Under the pieces are notes generated by a model. That model ran no database searches, was not told where the DNA came from, and worked only from the letters and a program-made list of their open reading frames with translations. Positions 11,920-23,598 of a DNA stretch of 64,000 nt are shown here, piece after piece. Position 1 is the stretch's first letter; the number at the start of each line of letters is the position of its first letter. The translations under genes and the position numbers were made by a program. The stretch lies in sequence record LC494302.1; one strand, given 5' to 3'.

Positions 11920-11984
11920 GCAGTTTACAAATCTTTACAATTGCCGGTATTGACTTATTTTGTCAGTACTGGCATAATGTATTC

Positions 11985-12030
11985 ATTGGCAGATAAGCCG
12001 TAGCCCATAGGGTGCGGGAGTGTATCTATA
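11985..12030 (+). ncRNA. putative small RNA, RCCCANNGGGTGC family
   Basis: TTGACT-N17-CATAAT (11950) then GGCAGATAAGCC hairpin and GCCCATAGGGTGCGGGAGTGTATC (12003-12026). Confidence 0.5.
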
Positions 12031-12049
12031 GAAAAAGTAGTTTAGTATA

Positions 12050-12087
12050 GTTACAATTGTGCACCCGGTGGGTTAGCTGTTGTCATG
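12050..12087 (-). ncRNA. putative small RNA, RCCCANNGGGTGC family
   Basis: Minus-strand TTGACA-N17-CATAAT (12122-12094) then ACCCACCGGGTGCACAATTGTAAC. Confidence 0.5.
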
Positions 12088-12204
12088 GGGTATATTATGC
12101 CAGTACTTGATAATGCTGTCAATACTTTTTTTTTAATATTCAGTACTGAAAACTATTTTTAAAAAGTACTTGCAAACTATGTTTAAAGGCGTATAATGTT
12201 TTAC

Positions 12205-12279
12205 ATCAGGACGGGGAACGAAATAAGTAACTTCCCGTTAAGTAGCCCAGGAGTAAGGCACACGAAAAACTCCCCTGAT
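12205..12279 (+). ncRNA. putative three-way-junction RNA (TAAG-N4-ACGAAAAA loop family)
   Basis: ATCAGG/CCTGAT closing stem, ACGGG/CCCGT and GGAG/CTCC hairpins; directly after promoter 12170. Confidence 0.5.
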
Positions 12280-12347
12280 AAAATAGTTTGACAATTGTTT
12301 TTAAAAGCGTATAATACTTACATCAACTACTGAATGAGGGTTACAAA

Positions 12348-12959
12348 ATGAAAACTATCACTACTACTACTTATGTTATGGCTTTTTCTGAATTGAACGC
12401 AGAACAACAAACGTCAGCTATCGAACTGGTTCGGGAACGTGAAAAAAACTTAAACGATGATTATTTTTCTGAAAGTGAAATTGAATACTATAAAGAAACA
12501 GTACTACCGGAATATGGCATTAATGACGCTGAAATACAATTCAGTGGCTTTTGGTCCCAGGGTGACGGTGCATCAATCAGTACTGACCACGTTGACGCAG
12601 TGAAGTTTTTACGCAAGGTAAGAGCATTAACTAAGTATCGCTCAATCCGTCACTTGCTGAATGAAGATGATTTGGCGATGAGTGTAAAGCGTTCGCACTC
12701 CCACTACTCGCATGAGAATACTGTAAGCGGGTACATTGAATCGGCTTACACTGATTTAACCGCAAAACAAGAAACGTTAGTTAATGAGCTTGAGGAACTA
12801 CTCACTGAAACTATTCGTGAATTATCCCGCAAGTTGTACCGTGATTTAGAGAATGCATATGAGGATCAATTCACTACTGAAAACATTACGGCACTGATTG
12901 AGGGTAACGAATATCAATTCAATGTTATTGATGGAGTAGTAGAATCAATCGAATATTAA
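12348..12959 (+). CDS. conserved phage hypothetical protein (FSGFWSQGDGAS motif)
   Basis: 203 aa acidic; SD GAGG; motif recurs in phage proteins of unknown function. Confidence 0.85.
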   Translation: MKTITTTTYVMAFSELNAEQQTSAIELVREREKNLNDDYFSESEIEYYKETVLPEYGINDAEIQFSGFWSQGDGASISTDHVDAVKFLRKVRALTKYRSIRHLLNEDDLAMSVKRSHSHYSHENTVSGYIESAYTDLTAKQETLVNELEELLTETIRELSRKLYRDLENAYEDQFTTENITALIEGNEYQFNVIDGVVESIEY

Positions 12960-13049
12960 TTTAAAAAGTACTTGCAAACTAAGTTTAAAAGCGTATAATA
13001 CTTTATATCGAGGCGGGGAGTGGTTCCCCGCTCAAACGAGGATTTAAAA

Positions 13050-13289
13050 ATGGCTAGTACTAAAACTTACAACGGACACAAAAACAAAACTCATTGGAAT
13101 GTAAGCCTTTGGATTAATAACGGTGAGTCATTGTATCGGCTTGCTCAAAGTTGCATCGCACAAAGTAGAACTAAAGATATTGCTGCGGAATGTATGTACC
13201 GCAGATTAAAAGCCAACGGTACTACTACAACGCCGGACGGCTTTAAGTATAGCACTACTGCGATCCGTGCTGCAATGGTTGGAATGTAA
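13050..13289 (+). CDS. hypothetical early protein (GHKNKTHWNVSLWINN family)
   Basis: SD GAGGA; paralog of 11009..11248. Confidence 0.85.
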   Translation: MASTKTYNGHKNKTHWNVSLWINNGESLYRLAQSCIAQSRTKDIAAECMYRRLKANGTTTTPDGFKYSTTAIRAAMVGM

Positions 13290-13346
13290 TATTCAGTACT
13301 GAGATAATGGCGGGAACTATTACCCGCCTTTACTGAGGGTTATCTA

Positions 13347-13634
13347 ATGAGTAAAGTAATAAAGTACAATGTGTTAAGCAAATCATTGTCTATCAGTGAA
13401 TGCACCGATGGTTTTTGGATGTACGATGAAACGCGTGGCATGAATTTAGCTATGCGTGCAAAAACTGCTGAGGCGGCGTATATTCAAGCACTGGAATACT
13501 ACCAGGAACGTTTGAAGGAAGTAGAAGAAGATTATAAAAGCCTCAAAGCGAAAGTAGATCATTTCGTCGGTCAATTCGTGGAAGACAACGACGAGGACGG
13601 GCACTACTGCGACCGTTGCGGATCTTACAGTTAA
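13347..13634 (+). CDS. hypothetical protein, coiled coil with C-terminal CDRC
   Basis: SD GAGG. Confidence 0.8.
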   Translation: MSKVIKYNVLSKSLSISECTDGFWMYDETRGMNLAMRAKTAEAAYIQALEYYQERLKEVEEDYKSLKAKVDHFVGQFVEDNDEDGHYCDRCGSYS

Positions 13635-13651
13635 GTACTAAGGATTATATA

Positions 13652-13864
13652 ATGAGTGATTTAATTGAACGTATCAAAGAGCTTGAAGAAAAAGAATTGC
13701 AGTTGATCGGGTTACGGAATAAAGTATTCCATGATTTAGGTGGCTTTATTAATGCCTGGGATAGTGGCGATCCTGATGCGTTACCTGCTAACCGCCAGGC
13801 GATGATCAATGATGTGCGTGGTGTCTTTGATTATGTTTTAAAAGTACTAGACACTAAGCAATAA
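13652..13864 (+). CDS. hypothetical protein
   Basis: ATG 13652 after AAGGA. Confidence 0.75.
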   Translation: MSDLIERIKELEEKELQLIGLRNKVFHDLGGFINAWDSGDPDALPANRQAMINDVRGVFDYVLKVLDTKQ

Positions 13865-13925
13865 AGGCGTATAATACTTTATATTGGTACTGACAAACAT
13901 TATAAGCGATGCAGGAGCTTTAATC

Positions 13926-14111
13926 ATGACAACATTATCTGAGGTTATCCGCGATCAAGCTGCAAAGGCTGGAATGACTGTTATCAATGTAGGGATCAAG
14001 ATTGAGATCTCCCCTAACGAGTTGCAAGGGATTCCCGATCCTACTAGCTGGGATCGTGCTGGGCGAATGATGAGTAATGCTTCATTACTGGACGGTACAA
14101 AATTTAATTAA
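13926..14111 (+). CDS. hypothetical protein
   Basis: ATG 13926 after CAGGAG. Confidence 0.75.
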   Translation: MTTLSEVIRDQAAKAGMTVINVGIKIEISPNELQGIPDPTSWDRAGRMMSNASLLDGTKFN

Positions 14112-14196
14112 AAAGTACTTGCAATTAGTTTTCAGTACTGTATAATGGTTTACATCAAAGGGAGAAATGGTTCTCCCTGGTAATGAGGAAAATACA

Positions 14197-14418
14197 ATGG
14201 CTAATATCACTACTCTTTCCCAACTGGAAGCACTGGTTAAATCTATGCGGGAACATGCCGACAAAATCGGCGTACAAGATCCAGCCGTTTGCTTCTGCGA
14301 CGAATTGAATGATGATACACTGGTAATAGCAGAAGTCCAGGACGTTTCTAACTATTCCTCGCGTTACACTGGCGGCGTAGCAAATAAAGGTGACTTCTGT
14401 TTATACCTTACAAAATAA
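14197..14418 (+). CDS. hypothetical early protein
   Basis: ATG 14197 after GAGGA; own cassette. Confidence 0.8.
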   Translation: MANITTLSQLEALVKSMREHADKIGVQDPAVCFCDELNDDTLVIAEVQDVSNYSSRYTGGVANKGDFCLYLTK

Positions 14419-14423
14419 CAACG

Positions 14424-14453
14424 CGGGGAGATAATAACTCCCCGTTACTTTTT
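14424..14453 (+). terminator. intrinsic terminator
   Basis: CGGGGAG/CTCCCCG then TTACTTTTT. Confidence 0.6.
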
Positions 14454-14473
14454 CAGTACTGAATCATTTAATA

Positions 14474-14518
14474 GACGGATCTCGGCACCCGGTGGGTTAG
14501 TGACTGTTTCGTCTTGAT
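14474..14518 (-). ncRNA. putative small RNA, RCCCANNGGGTGC family
   Basis: Minus-strand TTGACA-N17-CATAAT (14553-14525) then ...CACTAACCCACCGGGTGCC. Confidence 0.45.
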
Positions 14519-14661
14519 GTAGTAATTATGCCAGTACTGGATGCACTTGTCAACAACTATTTTTCAAATACTTTTTATTAAAATACTTGCAATTAGTTTT
14601 TAAACGCGTATAATGTTTTGCATAGGGGGAGCGGTTCCCCTGGTAACTAAGGAATAATAAA

Positions 14662-14898
14662 ATGCTTGAACAAATCAAATCAACGTCTGCGAATGTAACG
14701 GGAACGGTTGTACACTTTACTAGTGATGAATCGCGGGGCGTTCCCTATTGTGCTGTACATGTAAACACTGATGGCAACTACTGGTTTACGGTTTACGGAT
14801 CATATTCATTTGGACGGCCAGGGCATCAAAAAATTCTGGATAAAGTACAACCAACGGGTAAAAATATCACTGCCGAAATGTTTTATAAAAAATCATAA
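14662..14898 (+). CDS. hypothetical early protein
   Basis: SD AAGGA; own cassette. Confidence 0.8.
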   Translation: MLEQIKSTSANVTGTVVHFTSDESRGVPYCAVHVNTDGNYWFTVYGSYSFGRPGHQKILDKVQPTGKNITAEMFYKKS

Positions 14899-14982
14899 AG
14901 TACTTGCAATTAGTTTTTAGTACTGTATAATATTTTACATCGCAAGGGGAAACGGTTTCCCCTGGTAACTAAGGATAATCAA

Positions 14983-15282
14983 ATGAAAATTGCAATCATC
15001 GCCCTGGCTTTATCTGTTTCCTCTTTCGCTGTTAATGCGTCGTTAGATGTAAGTAGTGAAAAATTCATTCAGTGCACTGTTGCAATGACCGATGAAAGAA
15101 CTGGCGAGATTGTATTAAAGGATTTAGAGATCCAGCCGGAAGCATTTAAAAACGGCCCGTTCCATGAAGAAGACGAAAACGGTAGCACGACAATTTATTA
15201 TGATGCCAGTTCCAAGCGTGGATCGGTCACTGTAATGGATACTGAGAAAGTAACACACACAGGCGTTATTAATTGCCGTTGA
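14983..15282 (+). CDS. putative exported protein
   Basis: Signal peptide-like MKIAIIALALSVSSFAVNA. Confidence 0.75.
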   Translation: MKIAIIALALSVSSFAVNASLDVSSEKFIQCTVAMTDERTGEIVLKDLEIQPEAFKNGPFHEEDENGSTTIYYDASSKRGSVTVMDTEKVTHTGVINCR

Positions 15283-15303
15283 TAGATACTACGGGGTAAC
15301 ATC

Positions 15304-15534
15304 ATGACTAAGCGAATTGTTTTACTTAACGAAAGCAGTACTACACAACTACTTAACGCCGTGCATTATGATATTGAAACGAGCGTTAATCTTATCAGTA
15401 CTGTAGTACTGTTGGACACTGGAAAGGTCGCCAATGATAAAGCGATTGCAGGTATATTAACGGATCTTGAGCCTGGTAGCAGTGCACCCATAACGTTAAA
15501 TGGTAAAGTGTTTAATATTTTACTCACTGATTAA
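15304..15534 (+). CDS. hypothetical protein
   Basis: ORF track; SD GGGG. Confidence 0.75.
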   Translation: MTKRIVLLNESSTTQLLNAVHYDIETSVNLISTVVLLDTGKVANDKAIAGILTDLEPGSSAPITLNGKVFNILLTD

Positions 15535-15540
15535 GTACAT

Positions 15541-15562
15541 AGCCCACCAGGTGGGCTTTTTT
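15541..15562 (+). terminator. intrinsic terminator
   Basis: AGCCCAC-CAG-GTGGGCT then T run. Confidence 0.8.
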
Positions 15563-15651
15563 GTTTTTATAGTATCGTAGTACTGAGATACTTTGAAAAT
15601 AGTTTTAAGAAAGTAGTTGACATTACCACAGAAAAGCGTAGAATGTATTAC

Positions 15652-15724
15652 ATCAAGACGGGGAGCACTAAGTAGACCGCCAGTAAGTCGAACGAAAAAC
15701 TGGACACGTCGAGAAAACTTTGAT
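15652..15724 (+). ncRNA. structured leader, TAAG-N4-ACGAAAAA loop family (third copy)
   Basis: CCAG-TAAGTCGAACGAAAAA-CTGG (15680-15703); GACG/CGTC and ATCAA/TTGAT stems. Confidence 0.45.
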
Positions 15725-15767
15725 ACACTAATAAACGTAAACTAAACTTTAATTGAGGATTTATAAA

Positions 15768-16250
15768 ATGGCTAATGTAAAATCATTCATCAAAGCACTG
15801 GTAGCAAATGAAACTAACGTCGCGGCTGAGATCCTGGCTGAACTGGATAACGATACCATGAAAGCGGTACGCAATAATTTTAACATCGCGTACAGTACTG
15901 CGAAAGAACTACAAGCAAATAAAGCGGCAGAAATTGAAGCGGCAAAGGCGGCCCGTGAAGCAGAACTACAAGCAACAATCGAAAGTATCCAGGCGGCGGT
16001 GTCTGGATTGGATCTGGAAGTGGTTGTGGAAATGGCACATAAAGCCCTGGCGGTTAAGTATGGTGAAGATAAGCCAGAATCTAAACCTAAAAAATGGATT
16101 CAAGAACGTGTTACTGTAGTACTTGATAACGGGGAAGAACATATGATTCCTGTACGCGGTAACTGCATTGCGGTAGTACTGGACGCTATCAAAGAAAGCG
16201 GTATGACTCGCGAGGAATGGATCGAAGCTCATCGCAAAGTTGAAGCATAA
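15768..16250 (+). CDS. H-NS-like protein (coiled coil plus H-NS-like C-terminal domain)
   Basis: VLDNGEEHMIPVRGNCIAVVLDAIKESGMTREEW aligns by eye with the H-NS C-terminus [35 protein letters not shown]; Ala/Glu/Lys coiled coil upstream. Confidence 0.5.
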   Translation: MANVKSFIKALVANETNVAAEILAELDNDTMKAVRNNFNIAYSTAKELQANKAAEIEAAKAAREAELQATIESIQAAVSGLDLEVVVEMAHKALAVKYGEDKPESKPKKWIQERVTVVLDNGEEHMIPVRGNCIAVVLDAIKESGMTREEWIEAHRKVEA

Positions 16251-16271
16251 CAATTAAAGTACTGAATCACT

Positions 16272-16298
16272 AGCCCACCTTAAACAGTGGGCTTTTTT
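16272..16298 (+). terminator. intrinsic terminator
   Basis: AGCCCAC/GTGGGCT then TTTTT. Confidence 0.8.
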
Positions 16299-16535
16299 GT
16301 GTCTGTAGTATTCCAGTCCACCAGCACCGCCTAGAATCGATTCTAACGCATTAAACTGATTATCTGATGCATTGCCCTAGCTGGTGGCGTGAAGGTCGTT
16401 AGAATGCGATTGAGAGCGTTTAAAGTATTTTGCAAAAAGTAATAAAAAGTACTTGCACGATTAAGAGATTAGCGTATAATGTTTTACATCGAGAGGGGGA
16501 AACGGTTCTCCTTCCAAATCAAAGGAATCAAAACA

Positions 16536-16763
16536 ATGGCTATTATCATTACTCGCGTATCTGGTACTACTGGCAACGAACAAGTAGTTGCAGTCATTAC
16601 CAACAAGGAAGGTGCGGAATTGCAAAATGCAATGAATACCTGGGCCGTTAATGAGTTCGGTCAGTGGGCAAGTGTAGCATACATTGAAACCTATCAAGTG
16701 CCGTCGATTAGTTTAACTGATTTGGGCGTTGAGCGTATCCTTTGCCTGGATGAATTAAATTAA
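16536..16763 (+). CDS. hypothetical early protein
   Basis: ATG 16536 after AAGGA. Confidence 0.8.
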   Translation: MAIIITRVSGTTGNEQVVAVITNKEGAELQNAMNTWAVNEFGQWASVAYIETYQVPSISLTDLGVERILCLDELN

Positions 16764-16848
16764 AAAAGTACTTGCAAAGTAAATCGAATAAAGTATAATA
16801 CATTACATCAAGGGGAGAAATGGTTCTCCCCACTACAAGGAAACTAAA

Positions 16849-16992
16849 ATGAAAACTTGTCAATGTGGTCAGAAATCTATTACGGGTTTAAAGCGGGGCG
16901 TTGCTCTTTGCCAGTACCATTATAATTTACAAGTATGGGGTAAAGAATGGGCCGACCAGGTGGAAGCAGCAAAGAAAGCAAAAAGTAAGTAA
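16849..16992 (+). CDS. small Cys/His (zinc-binding-like) protein
   Basis: Hand-translated 47 aa MKTCQCGQK...LCQYHY; SD AAGGA; own cassette. Confidence 0.7.
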   Translation: MKTCQCGQKSITGLKRGVALCQYHYNLQVWGKEWADQVEAAKKAKSK

Positions 16993-17073
16993 AAATATTA
17001 TCACAGTACTATTGACATAGTTTGATAGTACTGGCATAATAGATTTTATCAAGACAACTAAGAGGAAATTAAA

Positions 17074-17418
17074 ATGGCTAACATCAATACTATAGCAGCA
17101 CAAAATATCAACCTGTCTTCTGTTGAAGTTGTACACATTGCCGCCCGGCGTTGGTTCCAGGCGTCTTATGGTAATACTTATTTCTCTTTAACGGTAGATG
17201 TTGAAATCAATGGCGAATTTATTGAAGTAGTAAACGTGCCGTTCCAATATGGCTACGGGGATCATTTTGACACTGTAGCAATGGAAGAATTTAGCAAGGT
17301 TATTAATATGGAAGGTAAAGAGTTTTTACGCGGTTCTTATCTTTCCCGTTTTTGCCGTGATAATAATATCACTGTTTATAGTTCGGTAACTGATGTTAAA
17401 CGCAAAAAAGATCTTTAA
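17074..17418 (+). CDS. hypothetical early protein (GNTY...YGYG...DVKRKKD family)
   Basis: Paralog of 23957..24280; SD GAGGA. Confidence 0.85.
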   Translation: MANINTIAAQNINLSSVEVVHIAARRWFQASYGNTYFSLTVDVEINGEFIEVVNVPFQYGYGDHFDTVAMEEFSKVINMEGKEFLRGSYLSRFCRDNNITVYSSVTDVKRKKDL

Positions 17419-17498
17419 TTAGCTTTACTTTATGCAGATACTTTGATATAGTGTCTGCATAGGGGAAAGAAATTAAATTAACTTAAGAGGATAGTATA

Positions 17499-17768
17499 AT
17501 GAAAAATATCAGTACTTTAATCGATGCAGGTACACATGTTCGGCGGTCTATGGTTGCAACCAGTACTACAAAACAAGTAGCGAGCGGTTATCTTGTATTT
17601 GTGCACGATGGAAAACTCCTGGAACGTTCAATCAATTTTGATGTTAAAAACAATTGCCGTTTTATTATCTTTAAGCGTGAGCAATATAAAATTGATTTAC
17701 CAGCAAAGCCCATTAGTGGGGCGTACAACGTGCAATCAATGTTTGAACGTCAACCATACACCTATTAA
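17499..17768 (+). CDS. hypothetical protein
   Basis: SD GAGGA. Confidence 0.8.
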   Translation: MKNISTLIDAGTHVRRSMVATSTTKQVASGYLVFVHDGKLLERSINFDVKNNCRFIIFKREQYKIDLPAKPISGAYNVQSMFERQPYTY

Positions 17769-17819
17769 TCAAAACATCGTTAGCGGTCGATTCAGGCCGC
17801 TTATATTGGGGATTATACC

Positions 17820-18092
17820 ATGAACGTTAATCAAGTACTGAATGAGATCGAAAGCATCATTAAACCGATGAAGCGTACTGATGCTATGTTAACACCGGAA
17901 GAATGCCGCCTTTATGAGCGTTACAGCGTCGAACAAGTCCAGGCAATGGCTATGGCTACCCCAGCCGTTAAACCGCCTGAGAATGCGTTACAGGACGTTA
18001 CAGGGGATTATATCATCAATCCAGTACTAGGGAAGATGGCTGCAATCACCGAAGATCAACAAGACTACTTAAGCCAGTACTTAAAAGGTTAA
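17820..18092 (+). CDS. hypothetical protein
   Basis: SD GGGGA. Confidence 0.75.
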   Translation: MNVNQVLNEIESIIKPMKRTDAMLTPEECRLYERYSVEQVQAMAMATPAVKPPENALQDVTGDYIINPVLGKMAAITEDQQDYLSQYLKG

Positions 18093-18097
18093 TTAAT

Positions 18098-18307
18098 ATG
18101 CTTACTGTACAGGATAAGATCGACATCTTAAAGGTTAATATGTATGTGATTGATGCAGTACCTGGTAAAGTATTTGCATACGATGATAGTACTGTAAGCG
18201 ATTTCTACTATAGCCAGGCCGTGGGGGATCTTTCTGTACAGTCGGTTATTGAAAACGTAGTTAATGCAGCGTATGAGCATTTACTTTCAAATAGTACTTG
18301 CAATTAG
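18098..18307 (+). CDS. hypothetical protein
   Basis: SD AAGGT. Confidence 0.75.
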   Translation: MLTVQDKIDILKVNMYVIDAVPGKVFAYDDSTVSDFYYSQAVGDLSVQSVIENVVNAAYEHLLSNSTCN

Positions 18308-18376
18308 TTTTTAAACGCGTATAATGTTTTACATGAAGGGGAGAAATGATTCTCCCCACTAATTAAGGAATATGAA

Positions 18377-18523
18377 ATGAAAGCATCAAAAAAGAGTACT
18401 AACAAGAAAGCACGTTCAACCTTAGATGGGGTATTCCCTTTACGTTTCGTTGATGAAGTGGTTTCCTACCCGCCTGGCCTTACTCCTGAGATGGTAGAAA
18501 GTTTGCGTAAATCTAAAAAATAG
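18377..18523 (+). CDS. small basic hypothetical protein
   Basis: Hand-translated 48 aa MKASKKSTNKK...; own cassette. Confidence 0.65.
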   Translation: MKASKKSTNKKARSTLDGVFPLRFVDEVVSYPPGLTPEMVESLRKSKK

Positions 18524-18604
18524 TACTTGCAATTAGTTTTTAGTACTGTATAATGTTTTACATAGAGGGGGGAAATGGTTCTCCCCAATAACAGGAGAAA
18601 CAAA

Positions 18605-18757
18605 ATGAAACAATACAACGCTCGGTTTGATGTTACTATCGGCAACGGTAAAGGTCAATTCTCTTTCAGTACTCGACGCAGTTATACAGAAAACTTCCTG
18701 CGTAATTGTGCACTGACCGCCGCACAAATTAAACATTACTTTCAGGCTAAAAAATGA
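18605..18757 (+). CDS. small hypothetical protein
   Basis: ATG 18605 after AGGAG. Confidence 0.75.
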   Translation: MKQYNARFDVTIGNGKGQFSFSTRRSYTENFLRNCALTAAQIKHYFQAKK

Positions 18758-18843
18758 GATCATTAGCTTATTACAGTTCGGCCCTGGTCGGTGCATTGAT
18801 CGCGGCGTTGTTAGTAACCTATCTATTCTTTATGGTGATTTAA
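18754..18843 (+). CDS. small membrane peptide
   Basis: 29 aa MRSLAYYSSALVGALIAALLVTYLFFMVI; ATGA overlap. Confidence 0.55.
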   Translation: MRSLAYYSSALVGALIAALLVTYLFFMVI

Positions 18844-18981
18844 ATGAATCCTAACGGTATAATTTACAGTACTCCTAAAACGAAAGCAGACAAGGTAAAC
18901 GCTAAAAAAGCGAAAGTAAAGGAGTACATCAAGCAAGGCATGACGCGAAAGGCGGCGATTCTAAAAGCTAAAAATAAATGA
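18844..18981 (+). CDS. small basic protein
   Basis: 45 aa Lys-rich MNPNGII...; abuts upstream stop. Confidence 0.6.
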   Translation: MNPNGIIYSTPKTKADKVNAKKAKVKEYIKQGMTRKAAILKAKNK

Positions 18982-18984
18982 AAA

Positions 18985-19019
18985 AAGTGGTTGACTTCGG
19001 TCAGCCATTTTGCTATTAT
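18985..19019 (+). terminator. terminator-like hairpin overlapping a promoter
   Basis: AAAGTGGTTGAC-TTCG-GTCAGCCATTTT contains -35 TTGACT (18991), N17, TATTAT. Confidence 0.65.
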
Positions 19020-19025
19020 ATATTC

Positions 19026-19070
19026 ATTGAGAGATAGCTCACTAGCCCACAGGGTGCAGGAGTGTATCTA
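19026..19070 (+). ncRNA. putative small RNA, RCCCANNGGGTGC family
   Basis: GAGAGATAGCTC hairpin then GCCCACAGGGTGCAGGAGTGTATC (19045-19068). Confidence 0.5.
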
Positions 19071-19192
19071 TTGTATAATGTTTGAGTACTTAAAACTATT
19101 TTTAAAAAAGTACTTGCAAACTATCTCAATAAGCGTATAATGTTTTACATCGCAAGGGGAAACGGTTTCCCCTAGTAATAAGGAAACAAATC

Positions 19193-19534
19193 ATGACTAT
19201 CTCAATTGCTCAATCTAACTTTGAAAACGAAATCATCGCCCAGGCACTGCGTTTAAATGATGGTCGGGCCGAAATCAATTACGGTTTCAATTCAGGCGGT
19301 TGTGAAAAATATCAGTACTTTATAACTGCTGATGGCTGTGTCCTGGGCATCAATACAGTTATTGTAAACATCCAAAAAATTAATTTCAATGATCCAGACG
19401 ATAGCCAGTTTTACATCACTGGCGTAGACGTGAACTATGAGGATGACTCACTAACTGATGATCACACTGGCGAGCGGTTAGAAAGTGCATACGGTGAAGA
19501 TGATTATCAGTCCGGTCCAGAAGATTTCGAATAA
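19193..19534 (+). CDS. conserved phage hypothetical protein (DVNYED...DDHTGERLESAYGE)
   Basis: SD AAGGA; own cassette. Confidence 0.85.
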   Translation: MTISIAQSNFENEIIAQALRLNDGRAEINYGFNSGGCEKYQYFITADGCVLGINTVIVNIQKINFNDPDDSQFYITGVDVNYEDDSLTDDHTGERLESAYGEDDYQSGPEDFE

Positions 19535-19627
19535 TATAAAAAAATAGTTTGACAATAGATTATAGTACTGTATAATGTTTTACATGAAGGGGAGAATAGT
19601 TCTCCCCACTAACAGAGAGAAAACAAA

Positions 19628-19840
19628 ATGGCTAATATCCGGTCGAAATTAAAAAATGCAAAACAAGTTTTATTTTCAGATCATGAATACTTTAATAAAG
19701 ATATTACAGGAGTTACAAGTATCAAGGAAGTAAAAGAAAAAACCGGCGTTTTGTGTGATGTGCGATTAGTTGGAACATTTGGGAATAACGTGCTATATCG
19801 CTGCGGTGATTACAATTTTACACTGACTATCATTAACTAA
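19628..19840 (+). CDS. hypothetical early protein
   Basis: Own cassette. Confidence 0.8.
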   Translation: MANIRSKLKNAKQVLFSDHEYFNKDITGVTSIKEVKEKTGVLCDVRLVGTFGNNVLYRCGDYNFTLTIIN

Positions 19841-19932
19841 AAATATTATCACAGTACTATCAAAGCTATTGACAATGATTGATAGTACTGGCATAATAAC
19901 TTTTATCAACTACACTACTAAGGAATTAAAAA

Positions 19933-20112
19933 ATGGCTATCATCGCAAAAACTGAAATCGTTGGTCTGGATTCTATCATCATGACGTTTGAAGATCAAAA
20001 AGGTATGTATGTAGTTTCCTATGGTGATTATGTTCGGGAGTATGAAACGGTAGACGAAGCCTTTGAAAGTTATATTCGCCAGGTGAATAAAGCATACGAC
20101 GACTACCGCTAA
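19933..20112 (+). CDS. hypothetical early protein
   Basis: Hand-translated 59 aa MAIIAKTEIVG...; SD AAGGA. Confidence 0.75.
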   Translation: MAIIAKTEIVGLDSIIMTFEDQKGMYVVSYGDYVREYETVDEAFESYIRQVNKAYDDYR

Positions 20113-20211
20113 AATATATTACCAGTACTATTAAATCTATTGACAATGTTTGATAGTACTGTATAATAAGTTTTATAAACAGTAGTTAACTTAACCTAAG
20201 AGAGAAATAAA

Positions 20212-20355
20212 ATGATCGCACTGGATTCATTCATCGACGCAGTACTGGCAAAAACTGGCGAGGATCTGACCGCAGAACAATACGCGATGATCGAACAATG
20301 TCAACAGGACGGTAAATCGGTGAAAGATACTGTTAAGATTATCCGCAAGATGTAA
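20212..20355 (+). CDS. small hypothetical protein
   Basis: Hand-translated 47 aa MIALDSFIDAVLAK... Confidence 0.7.
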   Translation: MIALDSFIDAVLAKTGEDLTAEQYAMIEQCQQDGKSVKDTVKIIRKM

Positions 20356-20361
20356 GATTAT

Positions 20362-20389
20362 AGCCCACTGGTTAACGCTGGTGGGCTTT
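20362..20389 (+). terminator. intrinsic terminator
   Basis: AGCCCAC...GTGGGCT then TT. Confidence 0.6.
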
Positions 20390-20460
20390 AATTCATCACC
20401 CTATACAATGCCAGTACTCAACCGTTTATCTCGTTAGAATGCGTTACAGGACGTTTAACA

Positions 20461-20658
20461 ATGATTAGCATGAAATCAGTACAAAAACAAATAGAAACAT
20501 TATCAAAAATTAAACGTAAACAGTACTCCTTAGAATATACAATCAATGGTAACTATCATCTAATGAAAGAGAATAATTTTATAGTCATTGATGAATCATT
20601 GCAAATCATTAGTATAGTACTGAAAGCATTAATCAATGACAGAAAAAAATTAAAATAA
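20461..20658 (+). CDS. hypothetical protein
   Basis: ORF track; weak SD. Confidence 0.55.
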   Translation: MISMKSVQKQIETLSKIKRKQYSLEYTINGNYHLMKENNFIVIDESLQIISIVLKALINDRKKLK

Positions 20659-20697
20659 TCTATTGACAATATCATCCAGTACTGGCATAATACTTAC

Positions 20698-20744
20698 ACC
20701 AAGACGAGAACGTCACTAACCCATAGGGTGCACAAATGTAACTG
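20698..20744 (+). ncRNA. putative small RNA, RCCCANNGGGTGC family
   Basis: TTGACA-N17-CATAAT (20663) then GACGAGAACGTC hairpin and ACCCATAGGGTGCACAAATGTAAC (20719-20742). Confidence 0.5.
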
Positions 20745-20989
20745 TATAATATTGATCAAAAAATGATCTGATCAATACTTGATCAATTTGCGTAAAGTAG
20801 TATAATTCTATGCAGTTGGTTAGACGAAAGGTTATGATTAGTAGTGCAAGTGTATAAAAATTTTCATGGTGTATCGTTCCGCACATATGGGGATGAATAT
20901 GTGGTATCATGTGGATTGGAAAAAGTAAGAACAAGTAATATTATTGTCGCATTACAGTACTATAGTATTTTTATAATGAGGTTAAAATA

Positions 20990-21247
20990 ATGGCTGTAGG
21001 ATTCGCGAAAGATGGGGCCGAACAAGACGAGATTAACGCAGTGATTCAGGCTGCCGTTAACCACGCTAGAAAGCAAATTAACGCACAAATAGAATCACTG
21101 ATACATTGCCTCGACTGCGGCGATATAATCCCTGAGAAACGACGCCAGGCCGTTAAGGGATGTAAGTACTGCATAACTTGCCAGGAGGATCATGATAGTA
21201 CTTTTAAACGTCCCCCGCGTAATTGTTGGCATAGATCTATGAGATAA
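20990..21247 (+). CDS. DksA/TraR-family C4 zinc-finger protein (YbiI-like)
   Basis: CLDCGDIIPEKRRQAVKGCKYCITCQE zinc finger; N-terminus MAVGFAKDGAEQDEIN resembles YbiI-type proteins. Confidence 0.85.
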   Translation: MAVGFAKDGAEQDEINAVIQAAVNHARKQINAQIESLIHCLDCGDIIPEKRRQAVKGCKYCITCQEDHDSTFKRPPRNCWHRSMR

Positions 21248-21310
21248 AAAGTATTGACAGTACTGAAAGATAGTTTATAATATTTTATATCTTAACTGAG
21301 GATTGAAATC

Positions 21311-21667
21311 ATGGGAATACAACATATCACGCGTACTACTGACAATGGCGAGATCACTGGCTATCAAGTACAGGGCAAAGTAGCACAATTGCAGTACTGG
21401 TTTGTTAAACGTGGAATCATTGCACCGGATCTTGATTATGACCGTGTAGCGTTTATTGATTCTCTTTATGTTGATCCTGATAGTCGGGGCAATGGTGAAG
21501 GTAACGAATTAATGAATGCCTTTATTGATGCCGCCGATGATTCAGATTGTATCATCTTAGAATGCGATACGGGAGAAGATAACGCCTTTAATCTTAAAGA
21601 ATGGTACGAAGGTTTCGGATTCGAGGTATTGATAGATAGTGAATATCCTATCATGATTTTATCATAG
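21311..21667 (+). CDS. GNAT-family acetyltransferase
   Basis: IDSLYVDPDSRGNGEGNELM (acetyl-CoA motif A) and LKEWYEGFGF. Confidence 0.85.
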   Translation: MGIQHITRTTDNGEITGYQVQGKVAQLQYWFVKRGIIAPDLDYDRVAFIDSLYVDPDSRGNGEGNELMNAFIDAADDSDCIILECDTGEDNAFNLKEWYEGFGFEVLIDSEYPIMILS

Positions 21668-21739
21668 TACTTGCATTTAGTTTTCAGTACTGTTATAGTA
21701 CTTACATCAAGGGGAAACATCTTCCCCTACTAAGAGGAA

Positions 21740-21934
21740 ATGAAAATGGAAAACTTATCAAGTATTTTAGTACAAGATGATTTCGGTAATCCTGGAAGTG
21801 CTATCATTGTTCGGGGCAATAAAGCAACGTTTGTTATTGCTGGTGGACCCGTACAGCGTAGCATTAAAAATAATGCTGTTACCATTAATAATGTACGCTA
21901 TCGCTTAGATAAAGAATTAATTCATAAACTGTAA
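21740..21934 (+). CDS. hypothetical early protein
   Basis: SD GAGGA; own cassette. Confidence 0.8.
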   Translation: MKMENLSSILVQDDFGNPGSAIIVRGNKATFVIAGGPVQRSIKNNAVTINNVRYRLDKELIHKL

Positions 21935-21961
21935 TATTAATTTAATAGAGGATAACAATAA

Positions 21962-22285
21962 ATGTACATTCATACTACTATCACAAAGGAAGTCCGTTGC
22001 CAGTTCGAAAGTATTCCGGGCGTATGTTTCATCACTGGTACGTTTTCCCCTGGTGATCGTGATAATCCAGTACTGTTACAATTACGCCATCCATCATGGG
22101 ATAAAGCATTTGATCTACCGTTGAATGAATTCGCAACTACTGCTGAAAAGTACATTAAAAATATTCGCGAGAATGATCGACTATTCATTAATGCTTTTAG
22201 TGATTCCGCGTTAAGCGAGATCCACGGCGTATTGGTTGCAATCATGGAATCAATGCAGAAAACTAAATTCAAACAAGGTGAATAA
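21962..22285 (+). CDS. hypothetical protein
   Basis: SD GAGGA. Confidence 0.8.
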   Translation: MYIHTTITKEVRCQFESIPGVCFITGTFSPGDRDNPVLLQLRHPSWDKAFDLPLNEFATTAEKYIKNIRENDRLFINAFSDSALSEIHGVLVAIMESMQKTKFKQGE

Positions 22286-22368
22286 AAACTATTGACAATA
22301 GATTATAGTACTGTATAATAAGTTACATGAAGGGGAGAAATGATTCTCCCCACTGAGAGGAAAGAAAA

Positions 22369-22581
22369 ATGCAAGGTCAACTAATCGTTCGTAAATGGTC
22401 TGATACTAACGAAAAACCGTGGGATGTACAATACATCGGACCGGATGGGGTATCACGTTATCAGCCTGGCGTAACGCATAGTACTGAGCAATATGCCGCC
22501 GCTCACCGCGAACGCCTGTTAGAATCCATGAAACAGGGATTCTGTGAAAAATTCATTCAAGATCATTGGCTGAAAGATTAA
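22369..22581 (+). CDS. hypothetical early protein
   Basis: SD GAGGA; own cassette. Confidence 0.8.
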   Translation: MQGQLIVRKWSDTNEKPWDVQYIGPDGVSRYQPGVTHSTEQYAAAHRERLLESMKQGFCEKFIQDHWLKD

Positions 22582-22598
22582 TAGAAGGAGTACAGCTT

Positions 22599-22691
22599 AT
22601 GCAAATGAATCCGATGATTATTGTTTTAGCTGTACTTATGATCATTCATGCAATTGTAGAAGTATTAACGCAATCAGGAGTAATAAAATGA
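22599..22691 (+). CDS. small membrane peptide
   Basis: 30 aa MQMNPMIIVLAVLMIIHAIVEVL...; SD AAGGAG. Confidence 0.6.
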   Translation: MQMNPMIIVLAVLMIIHAIVEVLTQSGVIK

Positions 22692-22861
22692 TTCAAGTAG
22701 AATTATCAGTACTGAAAGATCTGTTTTATCGGTTAGGTACTACTGGAGAGTATCCTAAAAGTGATACCGCAAAACTTTTTGTATCACTCGATTTATGGCA
22801 ACGCGAACAATTAGTAATGTCCTGGCGTAAAGGTAAAGCAGATAGCGAGGTGAAAGCATGA
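22688..22861 (+). CDS. small hypothetical protein
   Basis: 57 aa MIQVELSVLKDLFYRL...; SD AGGAG; ATGA overlap. Confidence 0.7.
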   Translation: MIQVELSVLKDLFYRLGTTGEYPKSDTAKLFVSLDLWQREQLVMSWRKGKADSEVKA

Positions 22862-23007
22862 AAGAATTCTTATTCGAAGTAGTGTTTCAAGGTGTCGGTA
22901 GTAATCAATTGATTCGCTCAAGTGGTTACAATGTTAACCAGGCATGGAATAACATTAAACAAATGTACCCGAACGCTATCACATATCGCAACCCAAAAGA
23001 AGTTTAA
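22858..23007 (+). CDS. small hypothetical protein
   Basis: 49 aa MKEFLFEVVFQG...; SD GAGGTG. Confidence 0.7.
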   Translation: MKEFLFEVVFQGVGSNQLIRSSGYNVNQAWNNIKQMYPNAITYRNPKEV

Positions 23008-23016
23008 AAATAATTG

Positions 23017-23057
23017 AAAAAGGGATTGACTCCGGTCAGTCCCTTTGCTATTATATA
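23017..23057 (+). repeat. 41-bp terminator/promoter module (copy 1 of 3)
   Basis: AAAAAGGGATTGACTCCGGTCAGTCCCTTTGCTATTATATA identical at 23017, 26009, 28265. Confidence 0.9.
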
Positions 23058-23060
23058 CGC

Positions 23061-23100
23061 ATAGAAACAAATCAGCCCACCGGGTGCATAAATGTATCTA
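23061..23100 (+). ncRNA. putative small RNA, RCCCANNGGGTGC family
   Basis: GCCCACCGGGTGCATAAATGTATC (23075-23098) after TTGACT-N17-TATTAT. Confidence 0.5.
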
Positions 23101-23180
23101 TTGTTTGCTGGTGGCTAGTACTGAAAACTATTTTTAAAAAAGTACTTGCATTGTACTTAGAATCAAGTATAATGTTTTAC

Positions 23181-23253
23181 ATCAGGACGGGGAACGAAAC
23201 AAGTAACCCCGTTAAGTAGTCCAGGAGTAAGACATACGAAAAACTCCCCTGAT
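23181..23253 (+). ncRNA. putative three-way-junction RNA (TAAG-N4-ACGAAAAA loop family)
   Basis: Near copy of 12205-12279; ACGGGG/CCCCGT and GGAG/CTCC stems. Confidence 0.5.
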
Positions 23254-23322
23254 AAAATAGTTTGACAATAGAAAGTAAACGAGTATAATACTTACATCAA
23301 CCACTGATAAGGAAACATAAAA

Positions 23323-23598
23323 ATGCGGATTCTACTGACAGCTAACGAAATCGAACAAGTACTGACTACTAACCTGGAAGACTGGAAACGTGAAGCAGAT
23401 ATCCAGGCGGTTCAATGGTTAAATGATAAGTTAACGCCGGATGACTTAAGCAAGATTGTAGATCCTCAATTCTACGAAGATATCCACGACACCGCGTTAA
23501 GCGTCGAGGATGTACTAGATAAGCACTTTATTGATACTGATTTGCAGGTTTACGGTCGTAAAAACTTTATCACTATTCACGACATTTACAATAATTAA
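23323..23598 (+). CDS. hypothetical early protein
   Basis: SD AAGGA. Confidence 0.8.
   Translation: MRILLTANEIEQVLTTNLEDWKREADIQAVQWLNDKLTPDDLSKIVDPQFYEDIHDTALSVEDVLDKHFIDTDLQVYGRKNFITIHDIYNN

Follow-up and report, generated by a model that had tools for sequence, protein, structure and literature searches.

What are the three short, similar units that stand directly behind early promoters in a 64,000-nucleotide (nt) stretch of sequence record LC494302.1 (the whole of which is hereafter called the window), and is it their RNA that matters? The window is the early, terminal-repeat-proximal region of the Asteriusvirus jumbo coliphages (SP27, PBECO4, 121Q and others, 94-99% identity), and it is laid out as a dense run of small plus-strand genes, nearly each with its own consensus promoter; only 3 of the ~33 promoters in this region carry the element. 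Our analysis shows one conserved, compact RNA fold in three copies, made by the host sigma-70 polymerase within the first ~100 nt of early transcripts, and this fold is very probably a real RNA structure maintained by selection. Covariation in a wider alignment, which had been set beforehand as the test of a structured leader RNA proposed in a preliminary description of this DNA, is present across phage lineages, and the element proves to be far more general than that description had suggested.

The three strings lie where they had been placed, as read directly from the sequence, and the pattern TAAG-N4-ACGAAAAA occurs at 3 sites in the 64 kb against 0.03 expected, a number reached in 0 of 100 shuffles. 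A covariance model of the core, built from relatives, found exactly 3 sites in the window (47-56 bits, E 1e-16 to 1e-19) and no other window match above 9 bits. The stems are GGAG/CUCC in copies 1 and 2 and CCAG/CUGG in copy 3, each around a 16-nt loop, and TAAGTAG precedes the stem in all three copies, as had been seen before. The stem change is real, and inside the window it is a single two-state contrast, the statistical support for stem covariation coming from other phages. The -10 hexamer of a near-consensus sigma-70 promoter lies 24-41 nt upstream of TAAGTAG in every copy, and the proposed start at the promoter's +1 holds closely, each copy beginning 2-3 nt past the predicted +1 and its closing helix P1 starting at nt ~3.

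Comparison of lineages resolved four helices, which we call Pb, Pk, P1 and Pa. The core, 35 nt long, follows the pattern UAAGUAG-N4-stem-UAAG-N4-ACGAA-N3-stem, in which the flanking stem (Pb) occurs as CCUG/CAGG, CCAG/CUGG, GGAG/CUCC and CUUG/CAAG, together with one U.G pair. The fixed loop length of 16 nt was confirmed, but this loop is not simply unpaired as had been assumed, since its G-N'-C, which follows UAA, covaries and pairs with the G-N-C that follows the invariant UAAGUA, so that part of the loop is a pseudoknot strand (Pk). The interleaved helices Pk and Pb, both backed by covariation, place the fold in the class of H-type pseudoknots, with an S1 of 3 base pairs (bp; Pk), a loop 1 of 2 nt, an S2 of 4 bp (Pb), a loop 2 of (A)UAA and an A-rich loop 3 of 10 nt (NN-ACGAA-NAN). 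Some 19 positions are invariant and most of these are unpaired (UAAGUA, UAA, ACGAA). When the first UAAG was relaxed, the motif gave chance matches only, with the exception of one GAAGUAG variant.

In 33 T7-like sequences 92% of the cells pair, as against 14-37% in slid controls, 10 of the 17 pairs changed on both sides, and the observed covariation score was reached by 0 of 500 shuffles. Across 35 distinct sequences from all groups, Pk and Pb are paired in 100% of the cells (slid controls, 20-38%), although the figure for Pb is partly a matter of construction, because the extraction script demanded 4/4 Pb pairing (a filter passed by every motif instance in a phage-leader context) and placed no filter on Pk; as the sequences are related, such cell counts also overstate the number of independent events. 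Double changes occur in three of the Pb pairs. The middle pair of Pk is A:U in 23 sequences, U:A in 8 and C:G in 4, is never unpaired, and switches at least three times among close relatives, namely between copy 1 and copy 2, between two SP6-like contigs and between two K1F-like subgroups.

The pseudoknot is enclosed by P1, the 3' strand of which begins 0-3 nt after Pb and is lineage-specific in sequence (CCUGAU, GCCG, CGUC, UUUCGG, UUGAC, ACCGAC, GAUGAC, CUAAUC or GUGAC), with a mean length of 5.5 bp against 3.0 in shuffled flanks. In T7-like phages the 5' strand of P1 lies inside the loop of the upstream hairpin Pa, which creates a second pseudoknot, and P1 covaries among them as GUCAA/UUGAC, GUCGGU/ACCGAC, GUCAUC/GAUGAC, AUUAG/CUAAU and GUCAC/GUGAC. 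The G.U pairs fit the transcribed strand only, being C.A mismatches on the other, and together with the family-wide covariation they lend strong support to a structured leader RNA. The subgroup of copies 1 and 2 shows no covariation at all because its sequences are too similar, and its P1 and Pa therefore rest on thermodynamics and on analogy with the other lineages. For copies 1 and 2 the predicted fold is a three-way junction with AUCAGG/CCUGAU as its closing helix (minimum free energies of -19.4 and -21.0 kcal/mol; z of -1.9 and -3.2). The junction drawn in the preliminary description is compatible with the data; it was incomplete in that the pseudoknot was missing.

A BLAST search with copy 3 matched Yersinia phage phiA1122 and other relatives of T7, where the E. 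coli promoters A1 and A2 flank the core. A1 starts at 498 and A2 at 626 of the T7 reference record, the core occupies 551-586, or +54 to +89 of the A1 transcript, and neither this record nor that of T3 has an annotated feature between A1 and A2. A 63-nt T7 query found one copy in each of 487 GenBank phage records (T7, T3, K1F- and KP32-like), the hosts of which are all Enterobacterales except in one probably mislabelled record, and pattern scans of IMG/VR added SP6-like contigs of ~43 kb with a single promoter, the element and a boxA ahead of the first gene. The form of copies 1 and 2 occurs with both of its promoters in phi92-like (outra, muut) and rV5-like (A73, A7_1) myoviruses, where the cassette precedes unrelated small genes, apart from muut, where it precedes the same 91-amino-acid gene as copy 2. 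In muut, a phi92-like Justusliebigvirus, the cassette of copy 2 and the start of this gene are found at 1500-1660 of locus L168, and cassette and gene have therefore been exchanged between phage families. A copy in CMSTMSU (locus L171, 400-560) has short deletions in the junction and the stem, and its record is flagged as unverified. The form of copy 3 is present in two jumbo phages, Salmonella phage Munch and Erwinia phage Hallingskeid. Phage 121Q carries three copies, as does the window, and each other genome tested carries one. The 5,426 complete E. coli genomes and the PLSDB plasmids that were scanned contained no copy, and among the matches listed from a scan of one genome per prokaryote species there were chance matches and one T3-like contig. 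What the carrier phages share is a host order rather than genes.

The element always lies within the first ~100 nt of a host-polymerase transcript from a strong early promoter, which in T7-like phages is the first promoter to enter the cell, and T7-like leaders have a separate 5'-terminal hairpin upstream of the pseudoknot. Another promoter usually follows; T7, T3, copies 1 and 2, Munch and Hallingskeid have an independent one there, and the downstream gene is consequently also expressed without the element. The distance to this next -35 hexamer varies from overlap or 0 to ~48 nt, the 3' strand of P1 in T7 being the A2 -35 hexamer itself, and a strong second promoter is absent from the SP6-like contigs and copy 3. 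In T7-, T3-, K1F- and SP6-like contigs a boxA (GCUCUUUAACAAUCUGG, identical over ~17 nt) stands 54-409 nt downstream of the element, which suggests Nus-factor recruitment on podovirus early leaders; the window gave no boxA-like match above chance, and the phi92- and rV5-like cassettes have no boxA. T7 and T3 also have a small hairpin with a UAACGAAAC loop just 5' of boxA, and such an ACGA-loop hairpin is not general among the podovirus loci.

The coordinates of the three copies and of their surroundings are collected in Table 1. Behind copies 1 and 2 the second promoter that had been noticed is indeed a perfect TTGACA-16-TATAAT (12/12 matches), 9 nt past the copy, and serves the next gene. No terminator or defined 3' end was found directly behind the units in the window. 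Wastewater and metagenome contigs cover the units, and such contigs cannot separate RNA from phage DNA or show where transcripts end. Copy 3 does lead a gene, as had been stated, and the unit stands between two strong and almost identical intrinsic terminators (AGCCCAC...GTGGGCT, then a T run), which makes it an insulated single-gene transcription unit. Homologues of this gene (30-34% identity) stand behind the same element in Munch and Hallingskeid. Its 160-amino-acid product had been called H-NS-like, a likeness for which Pfam and PDB sequence searches returned no match; by eye only, the C-terminal part resembles the H-NS DNA-binding motif.

Table 1. Features of the three copies and their surroundings in the window, with boxA positions at podovirus loci.
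Feature	Position	Strand	Details
Promoter of copy 1	12170-12197	+	TTGCAA-16-TATAAT; predicted +1 ~12203-12205
Copy 1 leader RNA	12205-12279	+	P1 12205-12210 with 12274-12279
Copy 1 hairpin Pa	12211-12238	+	
Copy 1 invariant UAAGUA	12239-12244	+	
Copy 1 pseudoknot Pk	12245-12247 with 12257-12259	+	
Copy 1 stem Pb	12250-12253 with 12270-12273	+	
Copy 1 A-rich loop	12260-12269	+	
Second promoter behind copy 1	12288-12315	+	12/12 consensus; drives gene 12348-12959
Gene behind copy 1	12348-12959		phrog_5162, function unassigned
Terminator upstream of copy 3 promoter	15541-15557		intrinsic
Promoter of copy 3	15617-15644	+	TTGACA-16-TAGAAT
Copy 3	15652-15724	+	minimal form without Pa hairpin; P1 15657-15660 with 15707-15710
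Copy 3 outer pairing	15652-15657 with 15718-15724	+	AUCAAG with CUUUGAU
Copy 3 UAAGUA	15669-15674	+	
Copy 3 Pk	15675-15677 with 15687-15689	+	
Copy 3 Pb	15680-15683 with 15700-15703	+	
Gene led by copy 3	15768-16250	+	160 amino acids, phrog_27871
Terminator behind copy 3 gene	16272-16293		
Promoter of copy 2	23146-23173	+	
Copy 2	23181-23253	+	P1 23181-23186 with 23248-23253
Copy 2 Pa	23187-23212	+	
Copy 2 UAAGUA	23213-23218	+	
Copy 2 Pk	23219-23221 with 23231-23233	+	
Copy 2 Pb	23224-23227 with 23244-23247	+	
Second promoter behind copy 2	23262-23289	+	12/12 consensus; drives gene 23323-23598
Gene behind copy 2	23323-23598		91 amino acids, phrog_14947
boxA at podovirus loci	L001 712-763; L027 4166-4185; L192 929-948		

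Most other early promoters of the window are followed by something simpler, a generic early cassette. At ~25 of the ~33 promoters between 10471 and 28864 the transcript begins with ACAUC and a plain 5'-terminal GC hairpin of the GGGGAGAA-loop-UUCUCCCC type, and a ribosome-binding site follows. The transcripts of T7 A1 and of the second promoter of outra open with a very similar AUCGAGAG-GGGA hairpin, and because of this resemblance promoter and leader modules seem to be common to several phage families. Two further promoter units (11950-12100 and 20663-20800) have no obvious open reading frame behind them and share the string CCCATAGGGTGC in their transcribed parts; they may represent a separate small-RNA family.

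The fold was compared with known RNA classes. None of the families of Rfam 15 was found at gathering thresholds, and the best scores at E up to 10 (14.6 and 12.6 bits) belonged to unrelated small RNAs. ARAGORN found 0 transfer RNA or transfer-messenger RNA genes in the window. A hammerhead or other three-way-junction ribozyme was set aside by inspection (two of the junction strands have 0 nt and the third is UAAGUAG-N4, where a hammerhead has CUGANGA and GAAA strands) and by the lack of an Rfam match, and A1 transcripts are not known to cleave themselves after decades of in vitro use. The preQ1-I and SAM-II riboswitches are likewise built from two short helices, S1 and S2, and an A-rich loop 3, and they too have invariant unpaired bases, but the element matches no Rfam model and has no expression platform. 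Like the nut sites and rrn leaders, which recruit host Nus factors, it is an early-leader RNA, with boxA downstream in the podovirus contigs mentioned above; unlike these boxB and boxA arrangements, the window has no boxA, the element is not a GNRA-like pentaloop hairpin, and no N-like protein is implied. The PeSL cassettes of T4-type phages, a promoter plus a simple hairpin, are similarly repeated before small early genes and exchanged between genomes, whereas the element has a specific conserved tertiary core.

The closest known parallel is the put RNA of phage HK022, which binds the beta' zinc-binding domain of RNA polymerase and suppresses pausing and termination. HK022 putL, a structured RNA of ~70 nt that begins at +2/+3 behind an early promoter, needs no phage protein for its action on RNA polymerase; its conserved unpaired bases contact the host polymerase, and its two long stems form a V with a minor-groove triplex (PMC9378689). 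The element is likewise a structured RNA of ~70 nt right behind an early sigma-70 promoter of an enterobacterial phage, but it is a 3-bp plus 4-bp H-type pseudoknot inside a closing helix, and it is found in virulent rather than temperate lambdoid phages. It is not a put RNA itself, as the putL region of HK022 lacks the UAAGUAG and ACGAA core and bears no likeness to it in sequence or fold.

How such an RNA might act is suggested by its invariant unpaired bases (UAAGUA, UAA and ACGAA), which, displayed on freely varying helices, would form an aptamer-like surface to which a host macromolecule binds. We expect this partner to come from the host and not from the phage, because the carriers are unrelated virulent phages with only an enterobacterial host in common, and the place of the element in early transcripts points the same way. 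By analogy with put (PMC9378689) we rank the transcribing RNA polymerase first, and our preferred, still tentative, reading is that the leader binds a host macromolecule, with this polymerase as top candidate, in the first seconds of infection; nearly as likely is that the same fold serves as a decoy for another host RNA-binding protein. In a put-like mode the nascent RNA would dock on its own elongating polymerase and alter pausing or termination for that polymerase only, and the arrangement promoter-element-promoter would yield two classes of polymerase, modified and plain. The presence of a second promoter suggests either that only some of the polymerases become modified or that the RNA is a product in its own right. 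Several observations weigh against action on the polymerase. The element is unrelated to put in fold and sequence. In T7 the A1 transcripts alone carry it, the A2 and A3 transcripts of the same genes being without it, and the genes behind copies 1 and 2 have their own promoter, so that an effect in cis on downstream expression cannot be essential, a point that suits a product acting in trans no less well. Copy 3 stands at the head of one gene, after which a strong terminator closes the unit, and in vitro the T7 early terminator reportedly stops A1 transcripts in the normal way, an argument against general antitermination.

The same layout lends itself to a less probable account in which the bulk early RNA is the product and the messenger incidental, the RNA acting in trans as a first strike that would tie up or block an RNA-binding protein, a nuclease or a component of the defences of the host. 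The independent promoter, owing to which the downstream gene can do without the element, is in keeping with this, as are the travel of element and promoter as a cassette before unrelated genes, the absence from E. coli chromosomes and the three copies in Asteriusviruses. It sits less well with the lack of a terminator or known processing site to set a 3' end and of a candidate target, and the wastewater contigs, being uninformative on transcript ends, lend no support to an accumulating small RNA. In a stronger and somewhat more doubtful version, a free-standing aptamer RNA would be the first gene product of many virulent enterobacterial phages, T7 included, neutralising a host factor or defence before phage translation; its target may be a protein, or a signalling nucleotide that is sponged. 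That the ligand is a small molecule, with the element sensing it much as a riboswitch does or soaking up a nucleotide of the host or of a defence system, is unlikely. The architecture is that of the preQ1-I and SAM-II class, and invariant unpaired bases around a small, P1-closed H-type pseudoknot are typical of ligand pockets, but at E up to 10 the element matches none of the riboswitch models of Rfam, and behind P1 there is no terminator or alternative pairing that sequesters a ribosome-binding site, often another promoter instead, so that a riboswitch is disfavoured for want of an expression platform.

The polymerase-binding leader also has to be set against two explanations that ask less of the RNA. 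A passive module, whose 5' fold would shield the transcript from 5'-end-dependent decay or stop backtracking at a promoter-bound polymerase downstream, would suit a region where 5' structure is a general theme, as the GC hairpins at the other promoters show, and where P1 of copies 1 and 2 begins at nt 3 of the transcript. We regard it as improbable, since a stabiliser or anti-backtracking device needs no 19 invariant, mostly unpaired bases across phage families, and T7-like leaders already own a separate 5'-terminal hairpin. A signal at the level of DNA, be it an UP element for the next promoter, a site bound by a protein or a hotspot at which a mobile promoter cassette recombines, might be read from the position of ACGAAAAA ahead of the following -35 hexamer, as in T7 and copies 1 and 2, from the overlap of the T7 P1 3' strand with the A2 -35 hexamer and from the movement of the cassette between phage families. 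The compensatory changes in four helices, with G.U pairs that would be mismatches on the other strand, the variable spacing to the promoter behind the element and the lack of a strong one there in SP6-like contigs and copy 3 make a DNA signal without RNA function highly improbable.

Few viruses have been studied as thoroughly as T7, and transcription biochemistry uses its A1 promoter and leader as standard reagents. The literature searched, including searches with the exact core strings, held no description of the element, with older T7 papers thinly covered and an earlier description therefore possible; the papers that matched the core strings used the T7 left end merely as a template, primer or cloned fragment. 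The element is thus apparently an undescribed RNA family. That podoviruses, myoviruses and jumbo phages, which have little in common apart from their host, keep a 35-nt core nearly invariant points to a function that is common to them, early and directed at the host, and the presence of the core in T7 makes this function directly testable with existing genetics and in vitro systems. An element that acts on RNA polymerase would add a second class, unrelated in structure, to the put-like RNAs, and one that serves as a decoy would be an early counter-measure of a new kind; should the free-standing RNA be the first gene product, it would represent an RNA-only early counter-measure common to unrelated phage families.

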